Shown here piece after piece: positions 16,613-64,000 of a DNA stretch of 64,000 bases. A model generated the notes under the pieces. The model worked only from the letters and a program-made list of their open reading frames with translations, did not search any database and was not told the origin of the DNA. Numbering within the stretch: position 1 is the stretch's first letter; each line of letters opens with the position of its first letter. The DNA comes from Mantamonas sphyraenae STR306 (taxonomy: Eukaryota > Protista > CRuMs), in contig JAPMXV010000067.1 of assembly GCA_026936335.1 (NCBI GenBank), positions 62,001-126,000 of the forward strand, in the 5' to 3' direction. Made by a program: the position numbers and the translations under genes.

Positions 16613-17923
16613 ATGCCCCACCGTCCCACGGTCCCGCTCCTGTGTGTCGCATTGGGACTGCTTGTGTTGGCCCAGCATGCACACACACATGCCCTCGATG
16701 TCCTTTGGATGGCACCCTTCTTCTCACATGGAGGCTACTCCAGCGAGGCGCACGCGTTTGTGCGCACATTGATCAGGAACGAATCCCTCGTGCGCACCGG
16801 AATGCTCCCACACGGCGATTCGACAGACATGAACTTTGTGAAGTCGCTGAGCAAGGACACTCATGCCATGTTGAGCCGGCTACGTGGCAATGCCATGGCC
16901 ATGGATTCGTTGCAGCTCAACGGCGTGGTGGTGTGCCATTCCGAACCGGGAGCATGGTACACCCCACTGCCAATGTACCACACCACCCCGTGTCCCTTCC
17001 CTTCAGCCAATTTCAAGGTGGGGAGGACCATGTTTGAAACGGATCGGCTGCCCGAGGGCTGGGCGCCGCGGCTGGGGTACATGGACGAGATCTGGGTGCC
17101 CACAGCCTTCCACAAGGACATCTTTGAGAGGGCCGGTGTGAAGAATGTCCATGTGGTGCCGGAACCGGTGGACACACAGGCACTGTTCAATCCCGACTTG
17201 TTTCAAACTCCGTTTCGCTTCCCTGACGTGCCGGGCGCGGACAAAGGCTTCAAGTTCCTTGCAGTGGGCAAGTGGGAGGACCGAAAGGGATGGGACGTGC
17301 TCATCCACGCCTATCTCACTGCGTTCAACGCCGACGACGACGTGGTGCTGTTTGTCAGATCGAGAGGCTACCATTCCGACGAGGGGTTCACGGTGCAGCA
17401 GGAGATCACCAACATCACCGAGGCATTCGGCTTTGGGGACGCCAGCAACAATCGCAGCAGTGCGTCCATTGTCGTGCTTGAACAGGACGTTGACGAACAA
17501 TCCATGGCCAACCTCTTCCGCTCCGTCGATGTCTTTGTCCTTCCATCCCGTGGCGAAGGTTGGGGCAGACCCCACGTCGAAGCCATGGCCATGGGCACTC
17601 CCATCATTGCCACCAACTGGAGTGGACCCACAGAGTATCTCGACGACTCTGTGGGCTATCCTCTGACCATCGACGGTCTCGAACCCGTGGCATCCGGTGA
17701 CTTTGCCGACCACCTTTGGGCGCTGCCTTCCTTCGACCACCTCGTGCAGCTCTTGCGACACACCGCCTCCCATCCAGAGGAGGTCAAGGAGAAGGGCAAG
17801 CTTGCACGTGCTCGCATCCACACTCGTTTTGGCCTTGATGCCATGCAGCATGTCCTGCACGAACATTTCTTGCGCATTGCCCGCAAGATGCACGTCGTTT
17901 CGTCACGCCCACCCTGGGGATAG
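16613..17923 (+). CDS. GT-B glycosyltransferase family 4 with signal peptide or anchor
   Basis: GRTMFETDRLP, DEIWVPT, KWEDRKGWDVL and DVFVLPSRGEGWGRPHVEAMAMG motifs. Confidence 0.9.
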   Translation: MPHRPTVPLLCVALGLLVLAQHAHTHALDVLWMAPFFSHGGYSSEAHAFVRTLIRNESLVRTGMLPHGDSTDMNFVKSLSKDTHAMLSRLRGNAMAMDSLQLNGVVVCHSEPGAWYTPLPMYHTTPCPFPSANFKVGRTMFETDRLPEGWAPRLGYMDEIWVPTAFHKDIFERAGVKNVHVVPEPVDTQALFNPDLFQTPFRFPDVPGADKGFKFLAVGKWEDRKGWDVLIHAYLTAFNADDDVVLFVRSRGYHSDEGFTVQQEITNITEAFGFGDASNNRSSASIVVLEQDVDEQSMANLFRSVDVFVLPSRGEGWGRPHVEAMAMGTPIIATNWSGPTEYLDDSVGYPLTIDGLEPVASGDFADHLWALPSFDHLVQLLRHTASHPEEVKEKGKLARARIHTRFGLDAMQHVLHEHFLRIARKMHVVSSRPPWG

Positions 17924-18070
17924 GAAGAGATGATGATGATGATGATGCTGTTCATTCCCCACAAAGAGATTCCCCCCCTCCTCTTCTTTCCTCCCTTCAC
18001 TGATGCCTTCAAATACACCCTTCCTTCTCTCCTTTGCCCCTTTCTGTCGATTGGTCTGGCCCTCATCACA

Positions 18071-19259
<1,189 letters not shown>

Positions 19260-19364
19260 GGTGTGTGTGTGTGTGGGTTGAGATGGCTAAGCTTGCGCCA
19301 AAGAAACCCCACCACCCACCCCCCCACACACACCCACACACACCCATCCAGTGGCTACTCGCCC

Positions 19365-22300
19365 ATGTCTGCGTTCTTCAAGTGGTACGAACGCCTGGTG
19401 AAGCGAGACGGAGGAAACCGTCTGAGCATCCAGGAGGGGGAGGCGGAGCAGGAGGCCCAGTTCTACCAGGCCATTGAGGCGTACCAAGAGACACAGGACG
19501 TGGAGGCAGGTGCACAACTGCTGAAACTGATGCGAGAGTATGCATTCCCAGTGTCAGAGTTGTGGGCAGCTGTGCGAATCATGCTGCAGGCGCCGGAACG
19601 GGAGGCGCGAGACCTGGGGTTTTGCGTGTTGGACGTGTGCGTGGAGAGTCAGTACGATCAGTTGGGCATCCTTCGCACAGAGATCCTGCACAGCCTGGCC
19701 TCGTTGGAGGGGGATTTGGCACAGCGGATTCGATCGGTGTCCTTGTTGACGCGTGCCGGAAGGGACATTCACCCCTTTGAACGCACACTGGGCCGGCTGC
19801 TGGCACAGTGGTGCACTGTACATTTGCGAGTGGACGAGGGCATGACCGCCCTGGTGAGCAGCAGCAGCAGCAGCAGCAGTGGGGGTGGAGAGGAGGCAGA
19901 GAGTATCAGTGACAAGGACCAGGTGCGTGTGGCGCTGGTGGAGCTGTGCACCCAAGTGGTCCGCTTCAACTTTGCCTCGCTGATTGCCGACGATGTGGCG
20001 CAGGTGTTGCGTGCGGTGTGCCAACTCAGTGACAATGCTGGCCATGTGGACATGTTGCGTTGTTGCATGCAGTTCATGGATGTGCTGGTGCGCTATGGCA
20101 GTGTGCCGACGCACGCCCTGCCCGACTGCGTGCACACCCTGTGTCGTGCCGTCAACATGTCCACCGTCTCCACCAATTGCTGGCAGGTGTTCAAGAACCT
20201 TCTACAGAGCAGGTATGGCACCGATTGTGTCACCATCCTCTGTGCCATCCTGGATGACCACCCACGCAACCCGTTTCTCCTCCTTCGCGGCGCCGTCTAC
20301 TTCCTCGGCATGGCCTGTTGGAGTTCCGAACGCGTTGGATCCCTCAACTATTCCTTTGCCGGTGTGTTGGCGTCCTACGAAGGGGTGCTGCTCAGCCAAC
20401 ACGATCTGGTGGCGTACGAAGTGCTGCTGGCCGTCCACAGGCTCATCCTCAAGTTTGGAGGCACCCTGTACGGCGAATGGGACCAATTGCACGTCATTCT
20501 CTCTCGCATTCACAATCGCAGCTGGCACAGGTTGACCTCGTTCAAAACGGTGTTGGGTCGTGTGTGCCAACAGATCACCCAGCTGTGTCAACAACGCAGC
20601 CATCGTGCACACGCCACCAAGCTACAGGACATCCTGCGCATGCTGGTGGAGTATGACACGTCACTGGACACGGCACAGTATCTGGTGGAGGTGCAGGCAC
20701 AGCACACAAGCACGCTGGAGCCGAATTGGATGGAAAACCTGACGGAGTTGCTGGACATGTTCTTTGTGGGGGCCAACAAGCACACACGTCTGCGTCTGCG
20801 TGCTCTCCAGGTGCTCCACGAGGCATGCATGCACAATCACATCCTTGCGGAACAGGAGTTGCTGCAGGACATCGTGTTGCCATACCTTGGCAATGCCCCA
20901 CGCATCCGCCAGCCCGCGGTACGCTGTGCTGCACTGCGCATTGTCGTCTACGTGGGTGTGCACTACGCTTGCACAGAAGCCCAGTTTGCACAACTGATGG
21001 CCATCCTGCACAACAACCTCACGCTTGCCACCAAGCACGCCAAGGATCACCACCACAATCGACAACACAAGCAGAAGCAACAACAGGAGGAGCAACAGCA
21101 GCAGCAGCAGCAGCAGGAAGTCAACAGCAAGCAAGACAGTGACGGTGGGGATGGTGGGGATGGTGGTGGTGAACTTGTCATACCGCGGAGCAGTCGCGGA
21201 AGGCAACGACGGTGGGAAGGGACTGAGCTGAGCACAAACAGCATTTGGGTGTGTGCACACGGATTGGTGCAACTGCTGCAGGCCACCCTGTATCATATCC
21301 CGCAGAGTCAGAGTCTGATGGTGATCCACACCATGATCAAACACCTGCGTGTGCCACACGCCATGTCCAGACTGGTCATGGTCCACTGCCTGTGCAGTCT
21401 TCGTGCCACACGCCAGTACCGTGTCTACATGGCCCTGGGCAGTCACTTGGGGCGTGAGGACGACAACAAAGAGGAGGGAGAGGAGGAACAGAGTAGGGGC
21501 GGCGGCGACGACGGAGCAGCAACACACGAGCACCCTGCGGACGGTTCCACAGGCGGTGGCAAACGATCTCGACATCAACAGTATGCCAACGCAGACGTGT
21601 GTCCTGAATCAGACAATTGGGACACAGCGTCGCAGGGCCCGCTGTTTGTGCGGTGCCATCGCCGTTTGGGAGAATCCACCGCTGTCGGCAGCAGCGGCAG
21701 CAGCCGATTGACCTCACCAGAAACCTCACCGCCTGGCATACGGACAAGTGTGAGCACAAACAGCAACAACGGCAATGGGTCAGCCAACACGACGACGACG
21801 ACCACCACCACCACAAGTGTCACTGCAGCAAGCTACAACAACAACACGGTGCACATGCGCATGGACGACGTGCTGGACGTGACACAGCTGCTCAAGGCAC
21901 TGATGGGCATCCTGCGGTACGAAACCAATTGGAAAGTGTTCAGTGCGGCTCTGTCGGGTCTGCATGCCATGGTGCTCAACGTGTACCTTGTGCGCGACAT
22001 GAACCTGCAAGAGTTGACGGAATCGCTGTGTGACACGCTTTCCCGTTGCACCCTGGCCAGCCGTGTGGTCAACAGTCAGGAGTTCACCGTGAACGACCGC
22101 GTGAGTTGGTACGTGCGTGCCTACCGTCTGCTGGACGCCCTCGCTGGTCTCCATGCCATCAGTTTCCCCGAGATCCGGCTGCCTCGCAGGCACCGACGCA
22201 CTCGTAGGGCCATCCTGGGCTGTTTTGTGGCAGGGTTGCCTGTGCAGATGTCGCGACTGATGCGCATCCACTCGACGGACATCCAGACGGTGTGTTTGGA

Positions 22301-35594: not shown

Positions 35595-37129
<1,535 letters not shown>

Positions 37130-49307: not shown

Positions 49308-50444
49308 TTATTTCAGTCTCACGGAGCGCGTGTTCTCGTGCAGCAGATCCAGGATGCCGTTGAAGCGAAAGAGGGTGGCGAGGGAATGGACAGAGTGGCC
49401 GTCGTCGGCAATATGGTTGATGTCTGCCCCAGCCTCCCACAAGGACTCCACCGTGTCTGCCATGCCCAGTGCCGCTGCCAACTCCACCGCTGTGTATCCT
49501 GGGTGTCTGCTGTCCTGCCTCGACACCTCTTCATTCGGGTCTGCCCCTGCCTGCAGCAGCACTTCCACCCGTGCACCGTATCCCACACGCACAGCATGCA
49601 GCAACGCTGTTTCCCCACGTGCACTGCGTGCATCCACCTCTGCACCCCCCTCCAACAGCTCCTTTACCGTCTCCGCCGACCCGTGTGGAGCAGAGGCTGC
49701 CAGGAGCAGAGCCGTGCAGCCGCTGTGTGGCTCTTGAGCCTCGAGGTCAGCTCCAGCCTCAACCAACATCTCCACCATGCGACTGCTGCCGCATTCCACT
49801 GCGTACATGAGCGCCGTCTTGGATTCGTATGTGCGTGTTTCCGTGTCTGCGCCTGCCTGCAGAAGGAGGTTGAGCACCTGCGGCTGGTTCTCCCTGGCCG
49901 CATGGGTCAGTGCCGTCCAGTTTCCCCTTCGCACTGCATTCACATCCGCCCCAGCGTCCACCAACACACGGAGGGTGTCCACATGCCCACCCTTGGCTGC
50001 CAGCTGCAACGGCGTCCAGGCCAGGCTGTTGCTGGTCTGTGGGTCTGCCCCGTGGCTCAGCAGCATGTCCACAATGGCTGTGTGTCCCTTGGCTGCTGCC
50101 ACACTGAGCGCGGTGCTGCCGTCCTGCTTCCTGGCTTCCACGTCGGCCTGGGCCTCCAGGAGCAGTCGCACCAGATCCCCGCTGCTGTTGCTATCCACGT
50201 CGCAGGCAAGCAGCAAGGGTGTCCAGCCCAGGGCGTTGGCTGCGTTGACGTCGGCACCGTTGTGGAGCAGCGCTTGCACGGTTTGTGGCATGGTGTGTGC
50301 CGTGGCGGCGAGGAGGGCGGTCCATTTGCCGTCGCCGCGGACGTTGACGAGGGACGGATCGAGAGAGGCGAGGGCGTTGAGGGAGCCATGGAGGCCATTG
50401 GAAGCTTGGGTGATGAGTTTCCTGGTGGAGGAGAGGGAGGACAT
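49308..50444 (-). CDS. Ankyrin-repeat protein (copy 1)
   Basis: About ten G.TAL..AA..GH...V..LL..GAD.. repeats. Confidence 0.9.
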   Translation of the reverse strand: MSSLSSTRKLITQASNGLHGSLNALASLDPSLVNVRGDGKWTALLAATAHTMPQTVQALLHNGADVNAANALGWTPLLLACDVDSNSSGDLVRLLLEAQADVEARKQDGSTALSVAAAKGHTAIVDMLLSHGADPQTSNSLAWTPLQLAAKGGHVDTLRVLVDAGADVNAVRRGNWTALTHAARENQPQVLNLLLQAGADTETRTYESKTALMYAVECGSSRMVEMLVEAGADLEAQEPHSGCTALLLAASAPHGSAETVKELLEGGAEVDARSARGETALLHAVRVGYGARVEVLLQAGADPNEEVSRQDSRHPGYTAVELAAALGMADTVESLWEAGADINHIADDGHSVHSLATLFRFNGILDLLHENTRSVRLK

Positions 50445-50537
50445 TGTCGAAGGGGAAGGGACGGGAGTTGGTGTGTGTGTGGGTTTGGGGAAGGTGCGCT
50501 GGGGGAGGCAATAGTTGAAGAGAGGGTGAGAGAGAGA

Positions 50538-53500
50538 ATGAGCAGGGGAAGGGACAGAGACAGAGGGGCAAGGAGAAGGAGGAAGGGTGGGAAGGGAGAG
50601 GTGAGGGAGATGCAAACGCGGTTTGTGGAGGTGGAGGTGTCAGGAGGGAATGGGGAAGGAGGTGGAAACGGGACAGGAGAGGAAGAGGGGAAGGAGGAGG
50701 AGGATGATGAGGGGGTGGATGTGGAGGGAGTGGGGAGGGTGGAAGGGAGGCACACGGGTGAGTCATCGTCGTCGTCAGGAAGGAGGGAGGGGCAGGGAAA
50801 GGCAGGGAACACGAAAGAAAGGAGGAAGTCGGGTGATCACTGGTGGGAGAAGGGCGGAATGAGGGATGTGAGGGTGCTGGTGCTGGGGAATGATGGGGAA
50901 GGGACACTGGGATCTGTGGAGGAGCTCAAGAAAATTGAAACGGTGTGTCATGAGAGGCAATTGGAGCCTTTGGCGAGGCTGGACGCTCGTCAGGACGATG
51001 TACTGCGGCTGTTGCGTGAGTATGGGCAGCACATGGTGCATATTGTGTCACACATGGGAAGGGAGTACGTGAAGGCTGTGGATGGGGACGTGAAGCGGCA
51101 GTCACTCGTGGATGCGGTGAGCAAGGCAAGGCCTGTGCTGGTGTTTCTGAACGGGTGTGAGAGCGAGGAGATGGCAAAGATGGTGGGTGAGTATGTGCCA
51201 GTGGTGGTTGGATACAGGGAGAAGGTGCTGGATGGGGCAGCTGTGAAGATGGCAGGGGCGTTCTATGAGGCATTGGGAGCGGGAGAAAGCGTGGAGACGG
51301 CGTTTGGTGAAGCCCAGAAGGCAGGAGGGGACAGGGAGGGGAAGAAGGCAGTGTTGGAGACATGGGAGGGATGGAAGAAGGAGAGGCTGGTGTATGGGGG
51401 AGGGAGGAGTGCAAAGGAGGCAGAGGCAGCAGCTCGAGTACTGGGTCTCCCCAGTCGCGAGCGGCCATTGACAAAATCCACCCATGGAGTCCCAGCGCAA
51501 TGGTTGTGGAACATTGCGCTGGGAAGCTTAGTCATGCTTGTGCTCATCGGCCTCGCTGTCTCCATCGTACGGGTAAAGCGGGTGGACAATTTGCAGAAGC
51601 AAAGAGAGCTTGTGGCGAGGAATGAGGTCATGGAGGAGGTGTGGGGAGAAGAAGGGGTGGTGGTGATGCATGGGGCACGGGGCATGGGCAAGACAAGTGT
51701 GGCACAGATGTATGCGTGGCAGGTGAAGGATGAAAGGGCGGCGGAGGTGGTGTGGTGGGTGCATGGGCAGAGCAGAGAGGAGGTGGTGAGTGATTTGCTG
51801 CAGTTGGGAGTGGCATTGGGGGTGATTACGGATGAAAAGGTGGAGATGGCGAACAAGGAGGAGGTGCGGGAAGGGATGGCGGGGCAGACGATGCGTGCAC
51901 TGGAGGGACGACGTTGGGTGATGGTTGTGGATGGAGTGGAGGAGTGGGGCGATGTGGAACCTGTGCTGCAGGAGGGAGGGACGGTGGTGGTGACGACGTG
52001 GAAGGATGGGATTTGGGACACGGGGGCGGTGGACAAAGTTGTACGCGTGGGGATCATGGAGGATGAGGAGGTGGATGCAGTGTTTGCCAGTGAAGGGGTG
52101 GTGGTGGTGGATGGAGAGGATGATGATGAGGAGGTGAAGGCGTATGGGGAGCTGAAGGAGCTTCTGGGAGGGATGGCGCTGGCTGTGCGACAAGCAGCGG
52201 CTGTGATTGGGGAAGATTACGGCGAAACGCGAGTGAGAGACTACAGAGAGGGACTCAAGGCGAGTGTGGAGGATATGGAGGAAGGAATTGAATCTGACGC
52301 GTACAACAAGACGACGGTGGCCGTGTGGAAGATGGCGATGGACGCAGCTGGGCAGAAGAACAAGGATGCAGTGGGGCTGATGCAGTGCCTGTCACTGTTG
52401 GATGGAGGAGGGGTGCAAGAGAGGGTGTTGGTGACGCTGATGGAGGATGTGGAGGGCGTTGGTAGCAGGGAATTGGCCAAGAGGACAGCGAAGAAAGCTA
52501 TGAAGGCGCTGAAGCGCGTGTCGCTGGTGCAACGGGCTGTGGATGGGGATGGTTGGCAGGTGCATGGATTGGTGCAAATGATGACACGGGGAGGGGAGGT
52601 GCTACAGGTGAAGGCAGATGGGAGGATGGAGGCATGGAGGCGCGTGATGAAGATGATGCGGAAGGAATTCCGATTCGACAGCAGTGGGGCATTGAAGGAG
52701 CTGGTGTGGCACAGGGAGATGCTGATGCATGGGGAGCGGGTGTGGAGGGTGTGTCATGCAGCGTGCCAAGCTTCAGGTGAGGTGGAAGAGGTCTGCTGGG
52801 TTGGGCAGAATGTGGTTGGTATGCAACTGTGGATGGGTGGATATAGAGAAGCAGAGAGGATGCTGGAGGAGGTGATGGAGGTGCAGAGGAGGGCAGGCAT
52901 GGATGGGGAGGAGAACGAGGGATGGGGAAGGAGCATGCACATCATGGCTGGGGTGTACAAGGCCAAGGGAGAGTACAATCGTGCACTGGAGCTGTATGAG
53001 AAGGCACTTTCGATCAGGCGACGGGTGCATGGTGGGGGTGAGCACCCGGATGTGGCCACGAGCATCAACAACATTGCTCAGGTGTACCATGCCAAGGGAA
53101 AGTACGATCGGGCACTGGGGCTGTATGAGCAGGCACTGGGTATCTGGCGACGGGTGCATGGTGGGGATGAGCACCCGGACGTGGCATCGAGCATCAACAA
53201 CATTGCTGGGGTGTACCATGCCACGGAAGAGTACGATCGGGCACTGGAGCTGTATGAGCAGGCACTGGAGATCTGGCGACGGGTGCATGGTGGGGATGAG
53301 CACCCGGATGTGGCCACGAGCATCCACAACATGGCTGAGGTGTACAATGCCAAGGGAGAGTACGATCGGGCACTACAGCTGCATGAGCAGGCACTGGCGA
53401 TCAAACGACGGGTGCATGGTGGGGATGAGCACCCGGATGTGGCCACGAGCATCAACAACATGGCTGTGGTGTACTTCAACAAGGGAGAGTACGATCGGGC

Positions 53501-53627
53501 ACTCGAGCTGTTTGAACAAGCAAGAGAGATCCTCCAAACGACACAAGCATCCCGTCAGCTTGTGCTCGCTGTCTTGAATGGCATCAAGAGATGCTCTCAG
53601 AAGCTCTCGTCCTCGAACCCGCAATGA
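50538..53627 (+). CDS. NLR-like CHAT-(TM)-NB-ARC-TPR protein (copy 1, five TPR units)
   Basis: CHAT motifs VHIVSHMG and LVFLNGCES. Walker A HGARGMGKT, Walker B WVMVVDGVE, VVVTT, GGMALAV, VHGLVQ. 43-aa TPR units. Confidence 0.85.
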   Translation: MSRGRDRDRGARRRRKGGKGEVREMQTRFVEVEVSGGNGEGGGNGTGEEEGKEEEDDEGVDVEGVGRVEGRHTGESSSSSGRREGQGKAGNTKERRKSGDHWWEKGGMRDVRVLVLGNDGEGTLGSVEELKKIETVCHERQLEPLARLDARQDDVLRLLREYGQHMVHIVSHMGREYVKAVDGDVKRQSLVDAVSKARPVLVFLNGCESEEMAKMVGEYVPVVVGYREKVLDGAAVKMAGAFYEALGAGESVETAFGEAQKAGGDREGKKAVLETWEGWKKERLVYGGGRSAKEAEAAARVLGLPSRERPLTKSTHGVPAQWLWNIALGSLVMLVLIGLAVSIVRVKRVDNLQKQRELVARNEVMEEVWGEEGVVVMHGARGMGKTSVAQMYAWQVKDERAAEVVWWVHGQSREEVVSDLLQLGVALGVITDEKVEMANKEEVREGMAGQTMRALEGRRWVMVVDGVEEWGDVEPVLQEGGTVVVTTWKDGIWDTGAVDKVVRVGIMEDEEVDAVFASEGVVVVDGEDDDEEVKAYGELKELLGGMALAVRQAAAVIGEDYGETRVRDYREGLKASVEDMEEGIESDAYNKTTVAVWKMAMDAAGQKNKDAVGLMQCLSLLDGGGVQERVLVTLMEDVEGVGSRELAKRTAKKAMKALKRVSLVQRAVDGDGWQVHGLVQMMTRGGEVLQVKADGRMEAWRRVMKMMRKEFRFDSSGALKELVWHREMLMHGERVWRVCHAACQASGEVEEVCWVGQNVVGMQLWMGGYREAERMLEEVMEVQRRAGMDGEENEGWGRSMHIMAGVYKAKGEYNRALELYEKALSIRRRVHGGGEHPDVATSINNIAQVYHAKGKYDRALGLYEQALGIWRRVHGGDEHPDVASSINNIAGVYHATEEYDRALELYEQALEIWRRVHGGDEHPDVATSIHNMAEVYNAKGEYDRALQLHEQALAIKRRVHGGDEHPDVATSINNMAVVYFNKGEYDRALELFEQAREILQTTQASRQLVLAVLNGIKRCSQKLSSSNPQ
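52921..53520 (+). repeat. 129-bp coding tandem repeat (TPR), five units
   Basis: HPDVA.SI.N.A.VY...GEYDRAL.L.EQAL.I.RRVHGGDE units. Confidence 0.9.
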
Positions 53628-54280
53628 ATCCTCACTCGTCTCTTCGTCACTCCCATCTCACATGCTTCACATACCCCACCGCGTCCCCAAGTCGCCGCCT
53701 CCTTCCCCCACACGCCCCATACAAACGCCTCGTCCCCTCCACTCCTTCTTCTCCCCCTCCATCCCTCTAATCAGCGCCGACGCTGTATCTCCAATTCCTT
53801 TCTCCTTGAACCCCCCACCAGCGCATGTTCCACAACCTCGCCTCTTTCTGAGCATCGCACACCATCACCACCCTCTCCATCCGTCCCCACCATCCACACG
53901 TGGCACCCTGTGTCTCCTTCCAGCCACGCCTGCATCATGTCACCCACCATCTCCACGAAAGACAGCACCCCATCCACAATGACCACCCACTGCCTCCATT
54001 CCCACCCTCCCTTGCCACGCCCCACCACTTGTCCTTACCAACCACGTGTCACCCCCACAGACATCCACCCGCTCCCTCTCTCTCACACTCCCTTCCCTTC
54101 TCCCCCTTCCAACCCGTCACTATTCCACACCCATTCCAACCCGGCCCCACACACCCCCACCCATTCCAATCTCCCCCAAACCCCCACCATTCCCCAACTC
54201 CTCAAACACCACACTCTCCCCATCACAAGAACCCCCCCCCCACCCCCATGCTCTCCCGCACCAAGCCAACAATGGTTCAT

Positions 54281-54663
54281 TTAAGCAGTCAGCACGCAAG
54301 CACCGCCCACCTTCTTGATCTTGCGCTCGGCCTCGGCAGAAAAGAACTTGGCCTTCACAATCACCGGCTGCTTCGGCAGCACTCCCTTGCCCAGCAGCTT
54401 GTAGAAGCCAGCCTTGGTGATGTCAATCACAGGCACCTTGTCCCCAGTCTTGGCTCCAGCGTACTTGGTGCGCGTCTCCTCGCTCACCAGCGTCCACAGC
54501 TTGTCCACGTTCAGCGCCGGGCGGTAGAACTTCTGCTGCGTCTTGTGGAAGTAGCGCATGCCGACCTTACCAAAGTAACCCGGATGGTAACGATCAAACA
54601 GGGTACGGTGGTGCGTCAGGCCACCCGCGTTACCGCGTCCACCCGGATGCTTTCGGTGCTTGC
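54281..54663 (-). pseudogene. RPL27A: Orphan duplicate of the RPL27A last exon (no adjacent upstream exons)
   Basis: [15 protein letters not shown]...GGACVLTA is intact and the CCCACAG acceptor is retained, but upstream sequence runs into the ankyrin copy 2 stop. Confidence 0.75.
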
Positions 54664-54779
54664 CTGTGGGTTCAATGCACACACACTCACACACACGCAG
54701 AAGCACACCAGAATCAACATTGATCCGTGTTTGCACACACATTCCTCACACACTCACTCTCTCCACTTCTCATGTGATC

Positions 54780-55847
54780 CTAGATGCAATGGGCAGAGTG
54801 GCCGTCGTCGGCAATATGGTTGATGTCTGCCCCAGCCTCCCACAAGGACTCCACCGTGTCTGCCATGCCCAGTGCCGCTGCCAACTCCACCGCTGTGTAT
54901 CCTGGGTGTCTGCTGTCCTGCCTCGACACCTCTTCATTCGGGTCTGCCCCTGCCTGCAGCAGCACTTCCACCCGTGCCCCGTATCCCACACGCACAGCAT
55001 GCAGCAACGCTGTTTCCCCACGTGCACTGCGTGCATCCACCTCTGCACCCCTCTCCAACAGCACCTTTACCGTCTCCGCCGACCCGTGTGGAGCAGAGGC
55101 TGCCAGGAGCAGAGCCGTGCAGCCGCTGTGTCGCTCTTGAGCCTCGAGGTCAGCTCCAGCCTCAACCAGCATCTCCACCATGCGACTGCTGCCACATTCC
55201 ACTGCGTACATGAGCGCCGTCTTGGATTCGTAGGTGCGTGTTTCCGTGTCTGCGCCTGCCTGCAGAAGGAGGTTGAGCACCTGCGGCTGGTTCTCCCTGG
55301 CCGCATGGGTCAGTGCCGTCCAGTTTCCCCTTCGCACTGCATTCACATCCGCCCCAGCGTCCATCAACACACGGAGGGTGTCCACATGTCCACCCTTGGC
55401 TGCCAGCTGCAACGGCGTCCAGGCCAGGCTGTTGCTGGTGTGTGGGTCTGCCCCGTGGCTCAGCAGCATGTCCACAATGGCTGTGTGTCCCTTGGCTGCT
55501 GCCACACTGAGTGCGGTGCTGCCGTCCTGCTTCCTGGCTTCCACGTCGGCCTGGGCCTCCAGGAGCAGTCGCACCAGATCCACGCTGCTGCTGCTATCCA
55601 CGTCGCAGGCAAGCAGCAAGGGTGTCCAGCCCAGGGCGTTGGCTGCGTTGACGTCGGCACCGTTGTGGAGCAGCGCTTGCACGGTTTGTGGCATCGTGTG
55701 TGCCGTGGCGGCGAGGAGGGCGGTCCATTTGCCGTCGCCGCGGACGTTCACGAGGGATGGATCGAGAGAGGCGAGGGCGTTGAGGGAGCCATGGAGGCCA
55801 TTGGAAGCTTGGGTGATGAGTTTCCTGGTGGAGGAGAGGGAGGACAT
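54780..55847 (-). CDS. Ankyrin-repeat protein (copy 2, C-terminus shortened by ~23 aa at the duplication junction)
   Basis: Near-identical to copy 1 but ends DDGHSAHCI* rather than DDGHSVHSLATLF...RLK*. Confidence 0.88.
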   Translation of the reverse strand: MSSLSSTRKLITQASNGLHGSLNALASLDPSLVNVRGDGKWTALLAATAHTMPQTVQALLHNGADVNAANALGWTPLLLACDVDSSSSVDLVRLLLEAQADVEARKQDGSTALSVAAAKGHTAIVDMLLSHGADPHTSNSLAWTPLQLAAKGGHVDTLRVLMDAGADVNAVRRGNWTALTHAARENQPQVLNLLLQAGADTETRTYESKTALMYAVECGSSRMVEMLVEAGADLEAQERHSGCTALLLAASAPHGSAETVKVLLERGAEVDARSARGETALLHAVRVGYGARVEVLLQAGADPNEEVSRQDSRHPGYTAVELAAALGMADTVESLWEAGADINHIADDGHSAHCI

Positions 55848-55952
55848 TGTTAAAGGGAACGGAAGGGTGTTGGTGTGTGTGTGTGTGTGTGGGTTTGGGG
55901 GAAGGTGCGCTGGGGGAGGCAATTGTTGTTGAAGAGAGGGTTGTGAGAGAGA

Positions 55953-58900
55953 ATGAGCAGGGGAAGGGACAGAGACAGAGGGGCAAGGAGAAGGAGGAAG
56001 GGTGGGAAGGGAGAGGTGAGGGAGATGCAGACACGGTTTGTGGAGGTGGAGGTGTCAGGAGGGAGTGGAGAAGGAGGAGGAAAAGGGACAGGGGAGGAAG
56101 AGGGGAAGGAGGAGGAGGATGATGAGGGTGTGGATGTGGAGGGAGTGGGGAGGGTGGAAGGGAGGCACACGGGTGAGTCATCGTCGTCGTCAGGAGGGAG
56201 GGAGGGGCAGGGAAAGGCAGGGAACGCGAAAGGAAGGAGGAAGTTCGGTGATCACCGGTGGGAGAAGGGCGGAATGAGGGATGTGAGGGTGCTGGTGCTG
56301 GGGAATGATGGAGATGGGACACTGGGATCTGTGGAGGAGCTGCGGGTGATTGAAGGGGCATGTCGAGGGAGGGCGATGGATGTATTGGGGCAAGTGGCCA
56401 CACAGCAGGCGGAAGTCCTGCGGCTGGTGCGCGAGTATGGGCAGCACATCGTGCATATTGTGTTTCACATGGGCAAAGAGATGGTGATGAGTGGGGATGC
56501 GCCAGTGACGTGCGATACGCTCGTGGAAGCGGTGTGGGAGGCAGGGCCTGTGCTGGTGTTTCTGAACGGGTGTGAGAGCGAGGAGATGGCAAAGAAGGTG
56601 GGTGAGTATGTGCCAGTGGTGGTTGGATATAGGGAGAAGGTGATGGATGGGGCAGCTGTGAAGATGGCAGGGGCGTTCTATGGGGCATTGGGAGCGGGAG
56701 AAAGCGTGGAGACGGCGTTTGGGGAAGGCCAGAAGGCGGCAGGGGACAGGGAGGGGAAGAAGGCAGTGTTGGTGACATGGGAGGGGTGGGAGAAGGAGAG
56801 GCTGGTGAATGGGAGAGGGAGGAGTGCAAAGGAGGCAGAGGCAGGATGGGCAAAGCGCGTGGACAATCTCAGCATGAAGAGGGAGCTTGTGGAGAGGAAT
56901 GGGGTCATGGAGGAGGTGTGGGGAGAAGAAAGGGTGGTGGTACTGCATGGAGCACGGGGCATGGGCAAGACAAGCGTGGCAGAGATGTATGCGTGGAAGG
57001 TGAAAGAGGAAAGGGCGGCGGAGGTGGTGTGGTGGGTGCATGGGCAGAGTAGGGAGGAGGTGGTGAGTGATGTGCTGCAACTGGGAGTGGCATTGGGGGT
57101 GATTACGGATGAAAAGGTGGAGATGGCGAACAAGGAGGAGGTGCGGGAAGGGATGGCGGGGCAGACAATGCGTGCGCTGAAGGGACGACGGTGGGTGATG
57201 GTTGTGGATGGAGTGGAGGAGTGGGGCGATGTGGAACCTGTGCTGCAGGAGGGAGGGACGGTGGTGGTGACGACGTGGAAGGATGGGATTTGGGACAAGA
57301 GGGCGGTGAACAAAGTGGTGCGAGTGGGGATCATGGAGGATGAGGAGGTGGATGAAGTGTTTGCCAGTGAAGGGGTGGTGGTGGTGGATGGAAAGGATGA
57401 TGAGAGGGAGGTGAAGGCGTATGGGGAGCTGAAGGAGCTTCTGGGAGGGATGGCGCTGGCTGTGCGACAAGCAGCGGCTGTGATTGGGGAAGAAGAAGAC
57501 GAAACGCGAGTGAGCGACTTCAGAGAGGGACTGAAGGCGAGCTTGGAGGATATGGAGGATGGAATTGTGTCTGACGCGTATGACAAGACGGCGATGGCAG
57601 TGTGGAAGCTGGCGATGGAGGCAGCTGGGGAGGAGAACGGGGATGCAGTGGGACTGATGCAGTGTCTGGCACTGTTGGATGGAGGAGGGGTGCAGGAGAG
57701 GGTGGTAGTCACGCTGATGGAGGGTGTGAAGGGCGTTGGTAGCAGAGATAAGGCCAAGAGGAGAGCGAAGAAGGCTCTGAAGGCGCTGAAGCGTGTGTCG
57801 CTTGTGCAACGGGCTGTGGATGGGGATGGTTGGCAGGTGCATGGACTGGTGCAGATGATGACGCGGGAAGGGGAGGTGCTGCAGGTGGAGGCAGACGGGG
57901 GGATGGAGGCATGCCAGCGTGTGCTGAAGATGATGGGGAAGGAGTTTGCCTTTGATCCAAGTGAGCCACTGGAAGAGCTGGTGTGGCACAGAGAGATGCT
58001 GATGCATGGGGAGCGGGTGTGGAGGGTGTGTCATGCAGCGTGCCAAGCTTCAGGTGAAGTGCAAGACGTGTGTTGGGTTGGGCAGAACGTGGCAGAGGTG
58101 CACATGTGGATGGGAGCATATGGGGAGGCGGAGAGGGTGCTGGTGGAGGTGATGGAGGTGCAGAAGAGGGCAGGCATGGATGGTGAGGAAATTGAGGGAT
58201 GGGCAAGAAGTTTGGCCATCATGGCTGGGGTGCACTTTGCCAAGGGAGAGTACGATAGTGCATTGGAGCTGTATGAGCAGGCACTGGCGATCAGGCGACG
58301 TGTGCATGGTGGAGATGAGCACCCAGATGTGGCCAGAAGCATCAACAACATGGCCATGGTGTACGATGCCAAGGGAGAGTACGATCGGGCACTGGAGCTG
58401 TATGAGCAGGCACTGGGGATCAGGCGACGCGTGCATGGTGGAGATGAGCACCCGTCTGTGGCCACGTGCATCATCAACATGGCTGGGGTGTACAAGGCCA
58501 AGGGAGAGTACAATCGGGCACTGGAGCTGTATGAGCAGGCACTGGGGATCAGGCGACGCGTGCATGGTGGAGATGAGCACCCAGATGTGGCCACGTGCAT
58601 CAACAACATGGCTGTGGTGTACCAGGCCAAGGGAGAGTACAATCGTACACTCGAGCTGTTTGAGCAGGCACTGGAGACCAGGCGACGCGTGCATGGTGGG
58701 GATGAGCACCCGGAAGTGGCAGCGAGCATCAACAACATGGCTGGGGTGTACTATGCCAAGGGAGAGTACAATCGGGCACTGAAGCTGTATGAGAAGGCAC
58801 TGGGGATCTGGCGACGTGTGCATGGTGGGGATGAGCACCCGGAAGTGGCAGCGAGCATCAACAACATGGCTGTGGTGTACAATGACAAGGGAGAATGCGA

Positions 58901-59807
58901 TCGGGCACTGGAGCTGTATGAGCAAGCACTGGAGATCCTGCGACGTGTGCATGGTGGGGATGAGCACCCGAATGTGGCCACGAGCATCAACAGCATGGCC
59001 ATGGTGTACTATGCCAAGGGAGAGTACAATCGGGCACTGGAGCTGTATGAGAAGGCACTGGGGATCTGGCGACGTGTGCATGGTGGGGATGAGCACCCGT
59101 CTGTGGCAGCGAGCATCAACAACATGGCTGTGGTGTACCATGCCAAGGGAGAGTACGATCGTGCACTGGAGCTGTATGAGCAGGCACTGGAGATCCTGCG
59201 ACGTGTGCATGGTGGAGATGAGCACCCAGATGTGGCCAGAAGCATCAACAACATGGCCATGGTGTACTATGCCAAGGGAGAGTACAATCGGGCACTGGAG
59301 CTGTATGAGAAGGCACTGGGGATCTGGCGACGTGTGCATGGTGGGGATGAGCACCCGTCTGTGGCTACGAGCATCAACAACATGGCTGTGGTGTACAACG
59401 CCAAGGGAGAGTACGATCGGGCACTGGAGCTGTTTGAGCAGGCACTGGCGATCGAGCGACGGGTGCGTGGTGGGGATGAGCACCCAGATGATGCCATGAG
59501 CATCAACAACATGGCCATGGTGTACCAGGCCAAAGGAGAGTACGATCGTGCATTGGAGCTGTATGAGCAAGCACTGGAGATCTTGCGACGGGTGCATGGT
59601 GGGGATGAGCACCCGAATGTGGCCACGAGCATCATCAACATGGCCATGGTGTACTATGCCAAGGGAGAGTACGATCGTGCACTGGAACTGTATGAGCAGG
59701 CAAGGGAACTCCTCCACATGACACCAGTATCCCCTGAGCTTGTCCTCGCTGTCTCCATTGGCATTCAGAGATGCACTCAGAAGCTATCGTCCCCGAACAC
59801 GCAGTGA
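55953..59807 (+). CDS. NLR-like CHAT-NB-ARC-TPR protein (copy 2, twelve TPR units)
   Basis: VHIVFHMG and LVFLNGCES; HGARGMGKT; WVMVVDGVE; GGMALAV; twelve 43-aa TPR units. Confidence 0.88.
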   Translation: MSRGRDRDRGARRRRKGGKGEVREMQTRFVEVEVSGGSGEGGGKGTGEEEGKEEEDDEGVDVEGVGRVEGRHTGESSSSSGGREGQGKAGNAKGRRKFGDHRWEKGGMRDVRVLVLGNDGDGTLGSVEELRVIEGACRGRAMDVLGQVATQQAEVLRLVREYGQHIVHIVFHMGKEMVMSGDAPVTCDTLVEAVWEAGPVLVFLNGCESEEMAKKVGEYVPVVVGYREKVMDGAAVKMAGAFYGALGAGESVETAFGEGQKAAGDREGKKAVLVTWEGWEKERLVNGRGRSAKEAEAGWAKRVDNLSMKRELVERNGVMEEVWGEERVVVLHGARGMGKTSVAEMYAWKVKEERAAEVVWWVHGQSREEVVSDVLQLGVALGVITDEKVEMANKEEVREGMAGQTMRALKGRRWVMVVDGVEEWGDVEPVLQEGGTVVVTTWKDGIWDKRAVNKVVRVGIMEDEEVDEVFASEGVVVVDGKDDEREVKAYGELKELLGGMALAVRQAAAVIGEEEDETRVSDFREGLKASLEDMEDGIVSDAYDKTAMAVWKLAMEAAGEENGDAVGLMQCLALLDGGGVQERVVVTLMEGVKGVGSRDKAKRRAKKALKALKRVSLVQRAVDGDGWQVHGLVQMMTREGEVLQVEADGGMEACQRVLKMMGKEFAFDPSEPLEELVWHREMLMHGERVWRVCHAACQASGEVQDVCWVGQNVAEVHMWMGAYGEAERVLVEVMEVQKRAGMDGEEIEGWARSLAIMAGVHFAKGEYDSALELYEQALAIRRRVHGGDEHPDVARSINNMAMVYDAKGEYDRALELYEQALGIRRRVHGGDEHPSVATCIINMAGVYKAKGEYNRALELYEQALGIRRRVHGGDEHPDVATCINNMAVVYQAKGEYNRTLELFEQALETRRRVHGGDEHPEVAASINNMAGVYYAKGEYNRALKLYEKALGIWRRVHGGDEHPEVAASINNMAVVYNDKGECDRALELYEQALEILRRVHGGDEHPNVATSINSMAMVYYAKGEYNRALELYEKALGIWRRVHGGDEHPSVAASINNMAVVYHAKGEYDRALELYEQALEILRRVHGGDEHPDVARSINNMAMVYYAKGEYNRALELYEKALGIWRRVHGGDEHPSVATSINNMAVVYNAKGEYDRALELFEQALAIERRVRGGDEHPDDAMSINNMAMVYQAKGEYDRALELYEQALEILRRVHGGDEHPNVATSIINMAMVYYAKGEYDRALELYEQARELLHMTPVSPELVLAVSIGIQRCTQKLSSPNTQ
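58201..59700 (+). repeat. 129-bp coding tandem repeat (TPR), twelve units
   Basis: Highly similar units with variation confined to a few codons. Confidence 0.93.
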
Positions 59808-60453
59808 ATCCTCACTCCTCTCTTCGTCACTCCCTCACCACCCATCTCACATGCTCCAAGTGCACCACGTTGTCCCGGGAATGTACAACCACCTGTACCA
59901 CCCCCCTGACGGTCTGAAGGTGTATCTACCCCCACCATCTTGCCCTTCCCCTGACCTCCACCTCTCTGACCGGCGCCGACGCACCCCTTGTTCCTCGTAC
60001 GGGTCTCCTTGATCCCCAACGAATGCATATTCCACACTCTATTCGCCTCTGTCTGAGGATCTTACTTAACCACCCTCTCCATCCGTCCACCATCCACACG
60101 TGGCTCCCTGTGTCTCCTTCCAGCCACGACTTCATCATGTGCCCAGCACCCCATCCACAATGACCACCCACTGCCTCCATACGCACCCCTCCCTTGCCAC
60201 ACCCACCACCACTTGTCCCTGCCCACCACGTGTCACCCTCCCTGCACCCCACCCGCTCCTTTCCCAGCATCTCTCTTACTCTTTACACTCCCTTTCGCAT
60301 TTTCCCTTCTCCCCCTTCCAACCCCCCACCATTCCCCACAATCTCCAATTTCCTCAAACACCCTTCACACTCTCCCCATCACAAGACCCGCACCTACCCC
60401 CCCCAACCCCCCCCCCCCCCATGCTCTCCCGCACCAAGCCAACAATGGTTCAT

Positions 60454-61567
60454 TTAAGCAGTCAGCACGCAAGCACCGCCCACCTTCTTGATCTTGCGCT
60501 CGGCCTCGGCAGAAAAGAACTTGGCCTTCACAATCACTGGCTGCTTCGGCAGCACTCCCTTGCCCAGCAGCTTGTAGAAGCCAGCCTTGGTGATGTCAAT
60601 CACAGGCACCTTGTCCCCAGTCTTGGCTCCAGCGTACTTGGTGCGCGTCTCCTCGCTCACCAGCGTCCACAGCTTGTCCACGTTCAGCGCCGGGCGGTAG
60701 AACTTCTGCTGCGTCTTGTGGAAGTAGCGCATGCCGACCTTACCAAAGTAACCCGGATGGTAACGATCAAACAGGGTACGGTGGTGCGTCAGGCCACCCG
60801 CGTTACCGCGTCCACCCGGATGCTTTCGGTGCTTGCCTGTGGGTTCAATGCACACACACACACGTCACCGCCGTCCATGTTCCCCATTCTCTGTGTCAGC
60901 TGTCTGCACACACCCACTCCATCATTCCCCATTCCCCCTTCCCCTCTCTCCCTTTCCCCGTTCCTCCACCTCTTCTCTATCCTCCACCGCAGGGCTGCCT
61001 TCATCCTTTGCCAAAGCCGCATTTTTCCCACCCGCCCAGCCACAATTCCCCTCCTCCTGCTCCTTCCGTGCCACCCCACTCCCCTCTCTTCCATCTCTCC
61101 CCATGCACACACCATCCATGCACCCGTTCCCACGCTCCCCATCCCCGTCCGGTCTCCCTTGCGTCGTCCAGGTGGCCCGTTCCCGGCCGCCCCTCGCATG
61201 CAAACCCGCGCCGGCCAGCCATCTTCCCCGCCCATGCCTCCCTGCACCCACTCTGCACCACCCTCCACCCTTCACCATCCTTCCACCAACCCCATCCACC
61301 CATCCACCGCCCATTCCTCCCATTTCCACCTATCCATCGTCCTGCAGCCCCGCCCAAACCCTCTCCCTCGCGCAATCCACCCCGACCCTCCAACTCACCG
61401 ACACGACCGTGACCAGCGCTCACGTGTCCTCGCTTCTTGCGGTTCTTGCTCAAACGGGCAACCTGCACATACATCCCAACCCAACCCAAATGTGTGTCAG
61501 TTTCCCACACACCCATTTCCACAATGCCTCCCCACACGTCGCCGTTCTCGCTGCCAAAGCTCACCAT
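60454..61567 (-). CDS. RPL27A: 60S ribosomal protein L27a (uL15); 3 exons (ATG-only exon, ~61462-61399, 60836-60454)
   Basis: ATG|GTGAGC; [21 protein letters not shown](G)|GTGAGT; [14 protein letters not shown]...[15 protein letters not shown]...GGACVLTA. Confidence 0.93.
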
Positions 61568-61754
61568 TTTCTATTGTGTTTTTGCTGGTGCCGCTCTCGC
61601 ATGCATACACAGCACCCGACACCAAACCACCGCACCCACGCACCCACGCACCTCATCCAAGGACGGGACCTCGCCTGTGATGCCACGTGCAATGCTGCAT
61701 ACCCGCATTCGGGCCCGAGGCTACGCGAGTGCCCAGTCCGGCCCAGCCGAAACG

Positions 61755-63476
61755 ATGTCCCAACAGTCCAAGCTTCTTTCAACGGAGAGCGACCTGCGCA
61801 GCAGCGGGAAGAAACTGAGCATTGTCAACTTCCAGTCGCATCTGGAGCAGTCCATTGCCTCTCAGATCGACGAGGCGGTGGAAAACCTGGGGATGTCCGA
61901 TGCCGAGAAGCAGGGCTTCAGCACCCTCTACCAGCGTTTCCTCAACGAACGCAAGAATGTCATCGATTGGGACAAAATCCAGCTGGTCGACGACGTACGT
62001 GTGCATGTGCATGCCCACAGGCGCCGGCACATTGGACACATTCCTGCGCTGCCGGCGTCCGTTTTTGCAGCCGTTTGTTTCCCCTCTTCTTGCCCCTTCG
62101 TCGCTAACCGCGCCCACGTTGCCACGGCACAGGAAACCGTCATTCCCTACGATTCCCTGGACGAGTGTGCGCCCGAGGACATCAAGGAGCTGCTGTCGGG
62201 TCTGGTGGTGCTCAAGCTCAACGGCGGTGAGTTTTCGGGGTTGTGTGCAGAGGGAAAGGGAATGACGCAACCCTCAAAGTCACTGACACAACACCCCCCC
62301 CCCCGGCTTCGCACAGGACTGGGCACAACCATGGGCTGCAAGGGACCAAAGAGTGCCATCGAGGTGCGCGACGACATGACGTTCCTGGACCTGACGGTGC
62401 GGCAAATCGAGTTTCTGAACGACAAGTACGACGTGGATGTGCCGCTGGTGCTGATGAACTCGTTCAACACGCAGGCGGAAACGGAAAAGATTGTGCGAAA
62501 GTACGACCAGCACAACGTCAACGTGGTGTCGTTCCAACAGTCGCAATACCCGCGTATCAGCAAGGACACGCTGTTGCCCATTGTGAACGGTGAGGACAAG
62601 GACAACAAGGACGGGTGGTATCCTCCGGGCCACGGCGACATCTACTCGTCGTTTTACAACTCGGGACTGATGGAATCGTTCCTGCAACAGGGCAAGAAGT
62701 ACCTGTTTCTGTCCAACGTGGACAACCTGGGTGCCACGGTGGACCTGAACATCCTGCGTCACTTTGCCGCCCAGAACCTGGAGTTCATCATGGAGGTCAC
62801 CGACAAGACACGCGCCGACGTGAAAGGCGGCACCCTCATCGAGTACGAGGACCGCGTCAAGTTGCTCGAAGTGGCCCAGGTGCCGGCAGAGAACCTGGAG
62901 GAGTTTAAGAGCATCAAAAAGTTCAAGATCTTCAACACCAACAACCTGTGGATCAACATCGAGGCCGCACACAAGGTGGTCACACAGGGCAACCTCAAGC
63001 TGGAGGTGATCCAGAACAACAAGACGGTCAACGGGGTCAAGGTGATCCAACTCGAGACGGCCTGCGGTGCTGCCATCCAACACTTTGAGCGCAGCGTGGG
63101 CATCAACGTGCCTCGCTCTCGCTTCCTGCCGGTCAAGAGCACTTCCGACCTGTTTATTGTGCAGAGCAACCTGTTTGAGGTGAACCACGGCAGTTTGGTG
63201 ATGAACCCGCGCAGGCAGATCTCCACCGTGCCTCTCGTCAAGCTCGGACCCAAGTTCAAGCATGTCGACGCCTACATGGAGCGCATCAAGTCGCCCCCCG
63301 ATCTGCTCGAGTTGGACCATCTCACCGTCAGTGGCGACGTCACTTTTGGGTCGGATGTGTCGTTGAAGAGCACGGTGATCATTGTTGCTGCACAGGGTGC
63401 ACGCATCGACATCCCCTCCGGATCCAACCTGGAGAACAAAGTCATTACGGGCGATTTGCGCATCATGGACCACTGA
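61755..63476 (+). CDS. UGP1: UTP--glucose-1-phosphate uridylyltransferase (UGPase); two in-frame introns
   Basis: VLKLNGG|LGTTMGCKGPKS, WYPPGHGD, SNVDNLGA, KTRADVKGG, FNTNNLW and RSRFLPVKSTSDL. Confidence 0.95.
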   Translation: MSQQSKLLSTESDLRSSGKKLSIVNFQSHLEQSIASQIDEAVENLGMSDAEKQGFSTLYQRFLNERKNVIDWDKIQLVDDVRVHVHAHRRRHIGHIPALPASVFAAVCFPSSCPFVANRAHVATAQETVIPYDSLDECAPEDIKELLSGLVVLKLNGGEFSGLCAEGKGMTQPSKSLTQHPPPRLRTGLGTTMGCKGPKSAIEVRDDMTFLDLTVRQIEFLNDKYDVDVPLVLMNSFNTQAETEKIVRKYDQHNVNVVSFQQSQYPRISKDTLLPIVNGEDKDNKDGWYPPGHGDIYSSFYNSGLMESFLQQGKKYLFLSNVDNLGATVDLNILRHFAAQNLEFIMEVTDKTRADVKGGTLIEYEDRVKLLEVAQVPAENLEEFKSIKKFKIFNTNNLWINIEAAHKVVTQGNLKLEVIQNNKTVNGVKVIQLETACGAAIQHFERSVGINVPRSRFLPVKSTSDLFIVQSNLFEVNHGSLVMNPRRQISTVPLVKLGPKFKHVDAYMERIKSPPDLLELDHLTVSGDVTFGSDVSLKSTVIIVAAQGARIDIPSGSNLENKVITGDLRIMDH

Positions 63477-64000
63477 GCAAGGAGTGAGGAAAGGCCAACA
63501 ACGCAATGGAGACATCATGGAAACCCCGCCGAACGAACCAAATCAACCCCCCAAAACCCTTCTGAAACCCACCCTGCACGTGGGCCTGCATCAACCAGAT
63601 CCGAAACGATGTCCAGGCACCACCGCCTCGGCAGCTTGCATCGGATCGTGCGGCTGGTCGTGGTCCTGTGTGTGTGGTTGTGCCTGGCGACCGTGCTAGG
63701 CGCGCGTGGAGAGGAATGCGCAACCTACACAGCCAGGTTCAACGACCAGCCAGCGCGCACACATTCACCCGCAGAAACACAATGCCCACCACAGACGTGG
63801 ACAGGTACGCAGACGCACACACATGCACCCGGTCTCCTCCACCGACTGTCGGGCGATTCCGGCCGCCGTTGGTTGGACGTTAGTCCGGGCCCACTTCCAG
63901 ATCCCCGCTCGCATGGGCCCGTTTTTCCCACCTGCCCACGCGCCACTGACGCATCCGCCACGCCGTACACCAGTGTACACAGACCACATCCGTGCAGGAG

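Follow-up and report, generated by a model that had tools for sequence, protein, structure and literature searches.

Is an ankyrin-repeat gene that lies head-to-head with a receptor gene carrying a caspase-type domain the receptor's working partner, or is it a neighbor by accident? The question is raised by a locus in a window of 64,000 nucleotides, positions 62,001-126,000 of contig C67 (JAPMXV010000067.1) in assembly GCA_026936335.1 of Mantamonas sphyraenae STR306. The assembly totals 25,061,354 bp in 78 contigs, and the host genome matches M. sphyraenae (CRuMs). The original prediction, made from the sequence of this locus, described a tandemly duplicated two-gene module, each copy pairing an ankyrin-repeat gene (ANK) on the minus strand with a NOD-like receptor (NLR) gene on the plus strand that encodes CHAT, NB-ARC and tetratricopeptide repeat (TPR) domains, and took the ANK protein for the guardee, inhibitor or substrate of the NLR.

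We consider it probable that the two NLRs are members of a dispersed and recombining CHAT-NB-ARC-TPR family, doubled here by one 5.4-kb duplication in which ANK and an RPL27A exon were passengers; this degree of confidence applies jointly to the whole explanation, including the mechanism proposed below. The explanation is built on the observed architecture and folds, the duplication breakpoints, the size of the family, the shuffling of segments among its members, and the variation in repeat number and at fixed repeat positions.

Both head-to-head pairs are present with both NLR open reading frames (ORFs) intact, and the predicted distance of about 95-105 bp between start codons agrees with measured ATG-to-ATG spacers of 93 and 105 bp. 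The M. sphyraenae genome, assembled with FALCON, is diploid with 9,416 mostly mono-exonic genes (mean 2,282 bp) (PMC10492846). We computed a genome-wide mean intergenic distance of only about 380 bp, so short divergent spacers are to be expected. The features of the locus, in window coordinates, are as follows.

49308..50444, minus strand: ANK copy 1, ankyrin-repeat-only, 378 aa, intact
50445..50537, no strand: divergent spacer 1, 93 bp, carrying a 16-18 nt element
50538..53627, plus strand: NLR copy 1, 1029 aa, with low-complexity N-terminus, CHAT, insert, NB-ARC and 5 TPRs
50859..51429, plus strand: CHAT domain of NLR copy 1, His172 at 51051-51053, Cys207 at 51156-51158, x-His-Met
51430..51570, plus strand: insert unique to NLR copy 1, 141 nt, between CHAT and NB-ARC
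51672..52571, plus strand: NB-ARC of NLR copy 1, Walker A at 51672-51695, Walker B at 51918-51938, GGMAL at 52167-52181, VHG at 52560-52568
52944..53570 (end approximate), plus strand: TPR array of NLR copy 1, 5 units of 43 aa
54281..54663, minus strand: orphan RPL27A terminal exon, 5' exons absent, probable duplication passenger
54691..54787, no strand: duplication junction, about 97 bp, supplying the new stop of ANK copy 2
54780..55847, minus strand: ANK copy 2, 355 aa, its C-terminus cut short at the junction
55848..55952, no strand: divergent spacer 2, 105 bp, 92% identical to spacer 1
55953..59807, plus strand: NLR copy 2, 1284 aa, with 12 TPRs from 58221
56274-56846, plus strand: CHAT of NLR copy 2, His172 at 56466-56468, Cys207 at 56571-56573
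56949-56972, 57195-57215 and 57837-57845, plus strand: Walker A, Walker B and VHG of NLR copy 2
60454..61567, minus strand: complete RPL27A gene, made up of a terminal exon (60454-60836), an intron (60837-61397) and putative short 5' exons that reach the ATG at 61567

The NLR and its CHAT domain

Both NLR ORFs begin with a low-complexity stretch of about 107 aa, followed by CHAT, an NB-ARC module and TPRs, which is the tripartite order of effector, NTPase and repeat sensor of NLR-like STAND proteins. Pfam profiles hit all three domain types, in NLR copy 1 as CHAT (114-250), NB-ARC (358-546; 30.8 bits, cut-off 23.5), DUF7779 and TPR_10. The structural model of the NTPase-TPR portion of copy 2 (predicted local distance difference test score, pLDDT, 83) matches the STAND-TPR protein 6MFV, CED-4, Apaf-1 and the plant protein NRC2, with a template modeling (TM) score of 0.58 against Apaf-1 (1Z6T), and predicts the fold of nucleotide-binding domain, helical domain 1 and winged-helix domain, complete with Walker A, Walker B and MHD-like His. 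The domain order and fold models thus bear out the proposed NLR architecture. The Walker A (GARGMGKT), Walker B (VMVVDGV) and MHD-like (VHG) motifs occur in both copies, as had been claimed along with the CHAT His and Cys, and GxGKT and the MHD-like His are invariant in 22 sequences. The claimed GxP-like motif stands less well: it lacks the proline (GGMAL), and sensor 1 reads TTW rather than TTR. These two departures from the NB-ARC class are family-wide. Outside this genome we found no close homolog of the NLR (best identity 23-28%) and none combining the whole CHAT-NB-ARC-TPR order with close identity; the nearest NB-ARC-TPR relatives include TPR proteins of the Streptomyces FxSxx-COOH system, at 23-28%.

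Copy 1 differs from copy 2 in having 5 rather than 12 TPRs and an extra 141-nt insert. The insert (51430-51570) is in frame and encodes a strongly hydrophobic helix (Kyte-Doolittle 2.76 over 19 aa); it is also bounded by an in-frame GT (51438) and AG (51578), whose removal would excise it almost exactly. It would therefore be either coding, with a helix separating CHAT from NB-ARC across a membrane, or an intron. No source for it was found among the family and locus sequences compared.

The CHAT model of copy 2 (pLDDT 86) finds its best match in SAVED-CHAT 8TL0 (E 1e-12; Z 22.1, root-mean-square deviation 2.3 over 177 residues), with a metacaspase and caspase-7 next at Z 15, and so predicts a caspase-hemoglobinase fold. 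His172 and Cys207, invariant across the family, lie at the ends of two core strands and align with the catalytic H375/C422 of SAVED-CHAT, in agreement with the claim that this is a CHAT domain of the caspase superfamily. A word-indexed search with the CHAT alignment returned no close homolog.

The earlier caveat that Met, not the usual Gly, follows the His extends to the whole family: every member reads x-His-Met-Gly, and both glycines of the Gly-His-Gly context are lost. We compared 110 CHAT homologs from outside the genome, taken from a search of 1.84 billion proteins (the nearest Atlas clusters are bacterial). Gly precedes the His in 104 of them and follows it in 91; the alternatives in the latter position are Ala, Ser, Thr and Asn, with Met in 0/110. 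The His-Cys spacing is 35, versus a mode of 42-43 in the homologs, and the post-His loop is about 7 residues shorter. Divergence between the two NLR copies peaks in the segment that surrounds the His (nonsynonymous rate dN 0.38, synonymous rate dS 0.42).

These features suggest a rival explanation, in which the receptor family is real and x-His-Met CHAT is a pseudo-protease whose role is scaffolding or recruitment, perhaps of an active caspase-like enzyme. The loss of a near-universal motif, the Met never seen in homologs, the shortened loop and the divergent His-flanking segment all speak for it. We nonetheless hold it to be rather doubtful. His-Met is shared with Roco-type CHAT proteins and one distant NLR of the genome at 26-30% identity, and the survival of both His and Cys at such divergence favors an active dyad. 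Homologs tolerate four other residues after the His, and the core dN/dS is 0.35. In clan CD proteases, moreover, the oxyanion contact at the residue after the His is made by its backbone amide.

In a tree, the x-His-Met CHATs group with one His-Gly member in a single clade on a long branch (98/93), and three canonical Mantamonas CHAT-STAND proteins fall outside it. L037, L039, L052, L003 and L004 are Roco-type proteins (a COR-like region, then CHAT) that belong to this clade of variant CHATs, with His-Met or His-Gly; ankyrin repeats are present in the L037 frame as well, and L052 lies tail-to-tail with an NLR paralog. L001, L002, L005, L006 and L008 are a separate CHAT-STAND group, with Gly-His-Gly in all three that are readable. 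At C21:17.9-21.0k a single 2,005-aa frame has an N-terminal match to the CHAT query and ankyrin repeats downstream, and is a possible CHAT-NTPase-ANK receptor. GC skew is extreme (up to +0.63) on the NLR coding strand at window 50000-59000, where the encoded proteins are Gly/Glu/Val-rich; this skew may bias trees and inflate stop-free frames.

The receptor family and its sensor

The genome holds 13 close NLR paralogs, eight in subfamily A (75-85% identity) and five in subfamily B (42-59%), as well as more distant ones. The two window NLRs, at 88% nucleotide identity, are no closer to each other than to a copy on C51 (89.3%), and their affinities switch along the gene. A recombination signal is correspondingly strong, with neighbor incompatibility at 0.406 versus 0.509 +/- 0.010 in shuffled data (0/1000 shuffles).

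The genes upstream of subfamily A members are varied: ANK (two here and one at C67:195k), an SNF2-RING helicase, DIM1, a DIM1 3' fragment, and two head-to-head genes, a nucleotide-sugar transporter (at 65 bp) and a FAN-like PH-domain gene. For most paralogs the inspection reached only about 1.2 kb beyond the start; in the upstream DNA inspected, subfamily B has no ANK. The C68:147.6k paralog carries the 3' end of the DIM1 gene that is found upstream of C68:159.4k, the same passenger pattern as that of the RPL27A exon. Shared 3' ends that would indicate transposition or retroposition of the NLR alone were not seen. In the subfamily B loci L030-L034 an additional exon lies upstream, and the small helical domain that it encodes has no Pfam hit.

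The sensor is built of near-identical 43-aa TPR units (mean identity 83% over 95 full units), in arrays of 5 and 12 units in the window and at least 56 in the C51 paralog. Variation is confined to positions 4, 7, 10, 14, 17 and 36; five of these six are in i, i+3/4, i+7 register, which puts them on one helix face. Nonsynonymous differences far exceed synonymous ones at positions 7, 10, 14 and 34 (at position 14, proportions pN 0.58 and pS 0.08), by pairwise counts rather than a phylogenetic test. The C51 array (C51:133-143k; L012/L051) lies in a 3,375-aa frame, with one stretch in another frame, a shifted tail and more units past the stop.

Could this family be something other than immune, a signaling or selfish family with fast turnover whose repeats vary by slippage alone? 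Several copies are broken, pN/pS over the whole repeat is below 1 (0.11/0.15), and an immune function is argued from analogy. Yet slippage would not be expected to leave variation at six positions, five on one helix face, with pN far above pS at 7, 10, 14 and 34, and the same pattern is reported for fungal NLR TPRs (PMC4986451). We judge a non-immune family very unlikely.

The duplication and the ankyrin-repeat neighbor

Self-comparison of the window places the duplicated unit at about 49385-54690 versus 54788-60863. The unit held to be a two-gene module in fact spans three genes, ANK, NLR and RPL27A, the last by its terminal exon. The junction cuts ANK copy 2, which loses its last 27 residues and gains 4 new ones; the right breakpoint lies within the RPL27A intron and leaves RPL27A copy 1 as an exon without its 5' exons. 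The NLR is the only gene complete in both copies. A single segmental duplication centered on the NLR looks like the explanation of this breakpoint pattern, and since one event produced both copies, they amount to one observation of ANK adjacency. The duplicated flanks are about 98-100% identical, and the ANK copies are about 98% alike (dS 0.035, dN 0.009).

A possible objection is that the tandem pair is an assembly artifact in which two diploid alleles were joined end to end. The genome is diploid (PMC10492846), the flanks are nearly identical while the NLRs differ as balanced alleles might, and several paralogs have frameshifts in repeats assembled from long reads. Against this, the junction contains about 97 bp that have no counterpart at either homologous flank, and it truncates two genes; identity falls to 84.5% in the 3' intergenic DNA, where indels are numerous; and in the FALCON assembly alternative haplotypes were split off into associate contigs (PMC10492846). 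The junction sequence and the divergence of the 3' intergenic DNA lead us to regard a mis-join as extremely unlikely.

The orphan RPL27A exon (window 54281-54790 region) keeps its acceptor and is identical in sequence to the copy at C67:191k. A GTGAGT donor lies just past the stop of ANK copy 2, for which the orphan exon could act as a spliced 3' end. Elsewhere in the window, a second local duplication joins 17874-19409 and 35595-37129 (1.5 kb, 98.6% identity). Rfam has no matches in 55001-64000.

If ANK were guardee, inhibitor or substrate, it should accompany the NLR. A check for paralogs beside ANK, which the original prediction had proposed, did turn up one further locus (at 92 bp), but 10 of the 13 close paralogs have no ANK within about 1.2 kb upstream, and two of the three adjacencies stem from the one duplication. 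Conversely, 12 other stand-alone ANK loci have no NLR alongside within the 2 kb examined. The breakpoints cut ANK and carry a ribosomal-protein exon, two other paralogs are head-to-head with housekeeping genes, the transporter and the FAN-like gene, and ANK does not diversify with the NLR. Because the NLR exchanges protease and sensor segments with ANK-less paralogs, a static ANK would make a poor lock-and-key partner. The analogy to paired NLRs fails as well, those being by definition two NLRs; the partner here has ankyrin repeats only. Thus the proposed role of ANK is disfavored: the pairing is probably incidental, and ANK probably shares a two-way promoter with the NLR without being needed in cis.

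Several points weigh against our account, the first of them at a third locus. At C67:190.5-195.2k the NLR and a complete RPL27A recur in inverted orientation (matching window 56115-61651), with an RPL27A intron 98.8% identical to that of the window, and the wider region (C67:190-196k) repeats the ANK/NLR/RPL27A arrangement with a different ANK head-to-head at 92 bp. Second, a 16-18 nt mid-spacer element occurs at exactly three places in the genome, spacers 1 and 2 and the third locus, by a pattern chosen after the fact and taken from copy 2 and the third locus. Third, the further ANK adjacency falls on the sole RPL27A-sharing locus. With at least about 80 ANK-bearing frames (hand count) among 9,416 genes, one further adjacency among 11 loci would by itself have a chance of about 10%; its coincidence with RPL27A is less likely by chance. 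Fourth, with both glycines around the catalytic His lost, protease activity is predicted only. Fifth, the family's immune function is proposed by analogy only, and sixth, we found no substrate; Pfam Gasdermin (PF04598) was blank genome-wide, a model that can miss microbial gasdermins.

The third locus fits an old ANK/NLR/RPL27A block that was later homogenized, which would be synteny and not yet function. The corresponding rival explanation is a true ANK-NLR pair, in which the ANKs of the block diverged to about 33% while gene conversion homogenized the NLR and RPL27A, and the co-transcribed ANK binds, inhibits or is guarded by the NLR. Beyond the third locus and the spacer element, centered alike at its three sites, this explanation can point to first repeats of the two ANKs that align in register (13/35 identical), to purifying selection still acting on ANK copy 2 (dN/dS about 0.26 against copy 1, 16 changes), and to a Roco-type frame on C3 whose single polypeptide combines ANK and CHAT. 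Most of this weakens on inspection. The third-locus ANK (272 aa, about 33% identical to the window ANK) scores 259 against the window ANK, no better than unrelated ANKs of the genome (197-498), and the two are not mutual best hits. The third-locus spacer similarity (p 0.005) is equaled by an ANK-less paralog, so that the element may simply be a promoter of the NLR itself. In the assembly, a frameshift interrupts the third-locus NLR where CHAT begins (we read it with X at the break). Added to these are the ANK-less paralogs, the stand-alone ANKs, the chance level of adjacency and a sensor that reshuffles while ANK stays fixed. We consider a true pair, function included, unlikely.

Two candidate signs of pairing were set aside: the spacer element as an ANK-pair signature, weakened by the ANK-less paralog, and a specific kinship of the window and third-locus ANKs, which four tests did not show. 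Searches for close homologs of ANK gave generic ankyrin hits only. A histone H3 C-terminal fragment lies beyond the third-locus ANK.

A fuller version would have caspase-armed NLR immunity in Mantamonas with an active x-His-Met CHAT, swappable between NB-ARC-TPR and Roco proteins, and the founding-locus ANK as dedicated inhibitor or guardee, co-transcribed, ankyrin-only, and replaced or diverged between loci; we think it quite unlikely.

Proposed mechanism and known systems

For the probable account, a dispersed family with passenger neighbors, homologs suggest how the receptor may work. A non-self ligand would bind the variable concave face of the TPR array; NB-ARC would then exchange nucleotide and oligomerize; the clustering would activate the CHAT protease at the N-terminus, much as SAVED-CHAT is activated when it forms filaments; and activated CHAT would cleave a substrate whose gene lies elsewhere, with cell death or some other defense response as the outcome. 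The immune system originally proposed thus keeps its NLR architecture, its modeled caspase fold and an immune-type mode of evolution, but not the role given to ANK.

CHAT is already known as an NLR effector in fungi and bacteria, and repeat-shuffling NLRs are known across domains. New here are the lineage of the host, an exchange of segments that spans the entire gene, and a CHAT clade with x-His-Met; our literature search found no paper joining Mantamonas and NLRs. Mantamonas is a deep-branching single-celled eukaryote and has a fast-shuffling, expanding NLR-like family armed with a caspase-type domain. Such a diversifying repertoire would carry the fungal and bacterial repeat-shuffling pattern to a free-living unicellular lineage, and NLR-triggered proteolysis in such protists would become testable. 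x-His-Met is also a naturally occurring departure from a clan CD motif that hardly ever varies, and would be easy to test biochemically.

The closest parallel in mode of evolution is with fungal NB-ARC-TPR NLRs, whose conserved repeats vary in number and have selected sites on the concave side (PMC4986451, PMC13449251). Those with high internal repeat conservation, such as Podospora anserina Pa_2_10340 (PMC4986451, PMC13449251), share the effector-NB-ARC-TPR order, near-identical repeats that vary in number and are hypervariable at a few positions each, exchange among the members of the family, and broken copies. They differ in that the Mantamonas host is a CRuMs flagellate, read here from one assembly, the effector is CHAT, and shuffling extends through CHAT and NB-ARC rather than the repeats alone.

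Fungal CHAT-protease NLRs and TPR proteins activate gasdermins encoded next door (PMC9815663, PMC12881547). The N-terminal CHAT on an NLR or TPR sensor is common to both; in Mantamonas the neighbor is an ANK-only gene, the motif is x-His-Met, and no gasdermin gene adjoins the protease, the neighbors being ANK and RPL27A.

SAVED-CHAT of Haliangium ochraceum (8TL0; bioRxiv 10.1101/2023.06.23.546230) is the best sequence and structure match, with His and Cys in register, and its activation by oligomerization is the model for what we propose of the Mantamonas NLR. Its own features are a SAVED sensor that binds cA3, a PCaspase substrate and PCi inhibitor in the operon, and a retained Gly-His-Gly. 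Multicellular bacteria encode all-in-one P0066 CHAT-NB-ARC-WD40 and P0077 CHAT-NACHT-HEAT proteins (bioRxiv 10.1101/2020.01.06.895854). Bacterial CHAT-STAND-repeat proteins of this kind likewise place a compact CHAT ahead of a STAND NTPase and repeats, but with a canonical catalytic motif (bioRxiv 10.1101/2020.01.06.895854).

Plant head-to-head sensor/helper pairs (PMC12258605) resemble this locus in their divergent genes and short shared spacer; there both partners are NLRs, whereas in Mantamonas one of the two is an ANK-only gene and most paralogs lack the pairing. Finally, Apaf-1/caspase-9 and CED-4/CED-3 likewise couple an NB-ARC fold to a clan CD protease; in Mantamonas the protease is fused to the NTPase, there is no CARD, and the sensor is a TPR array.

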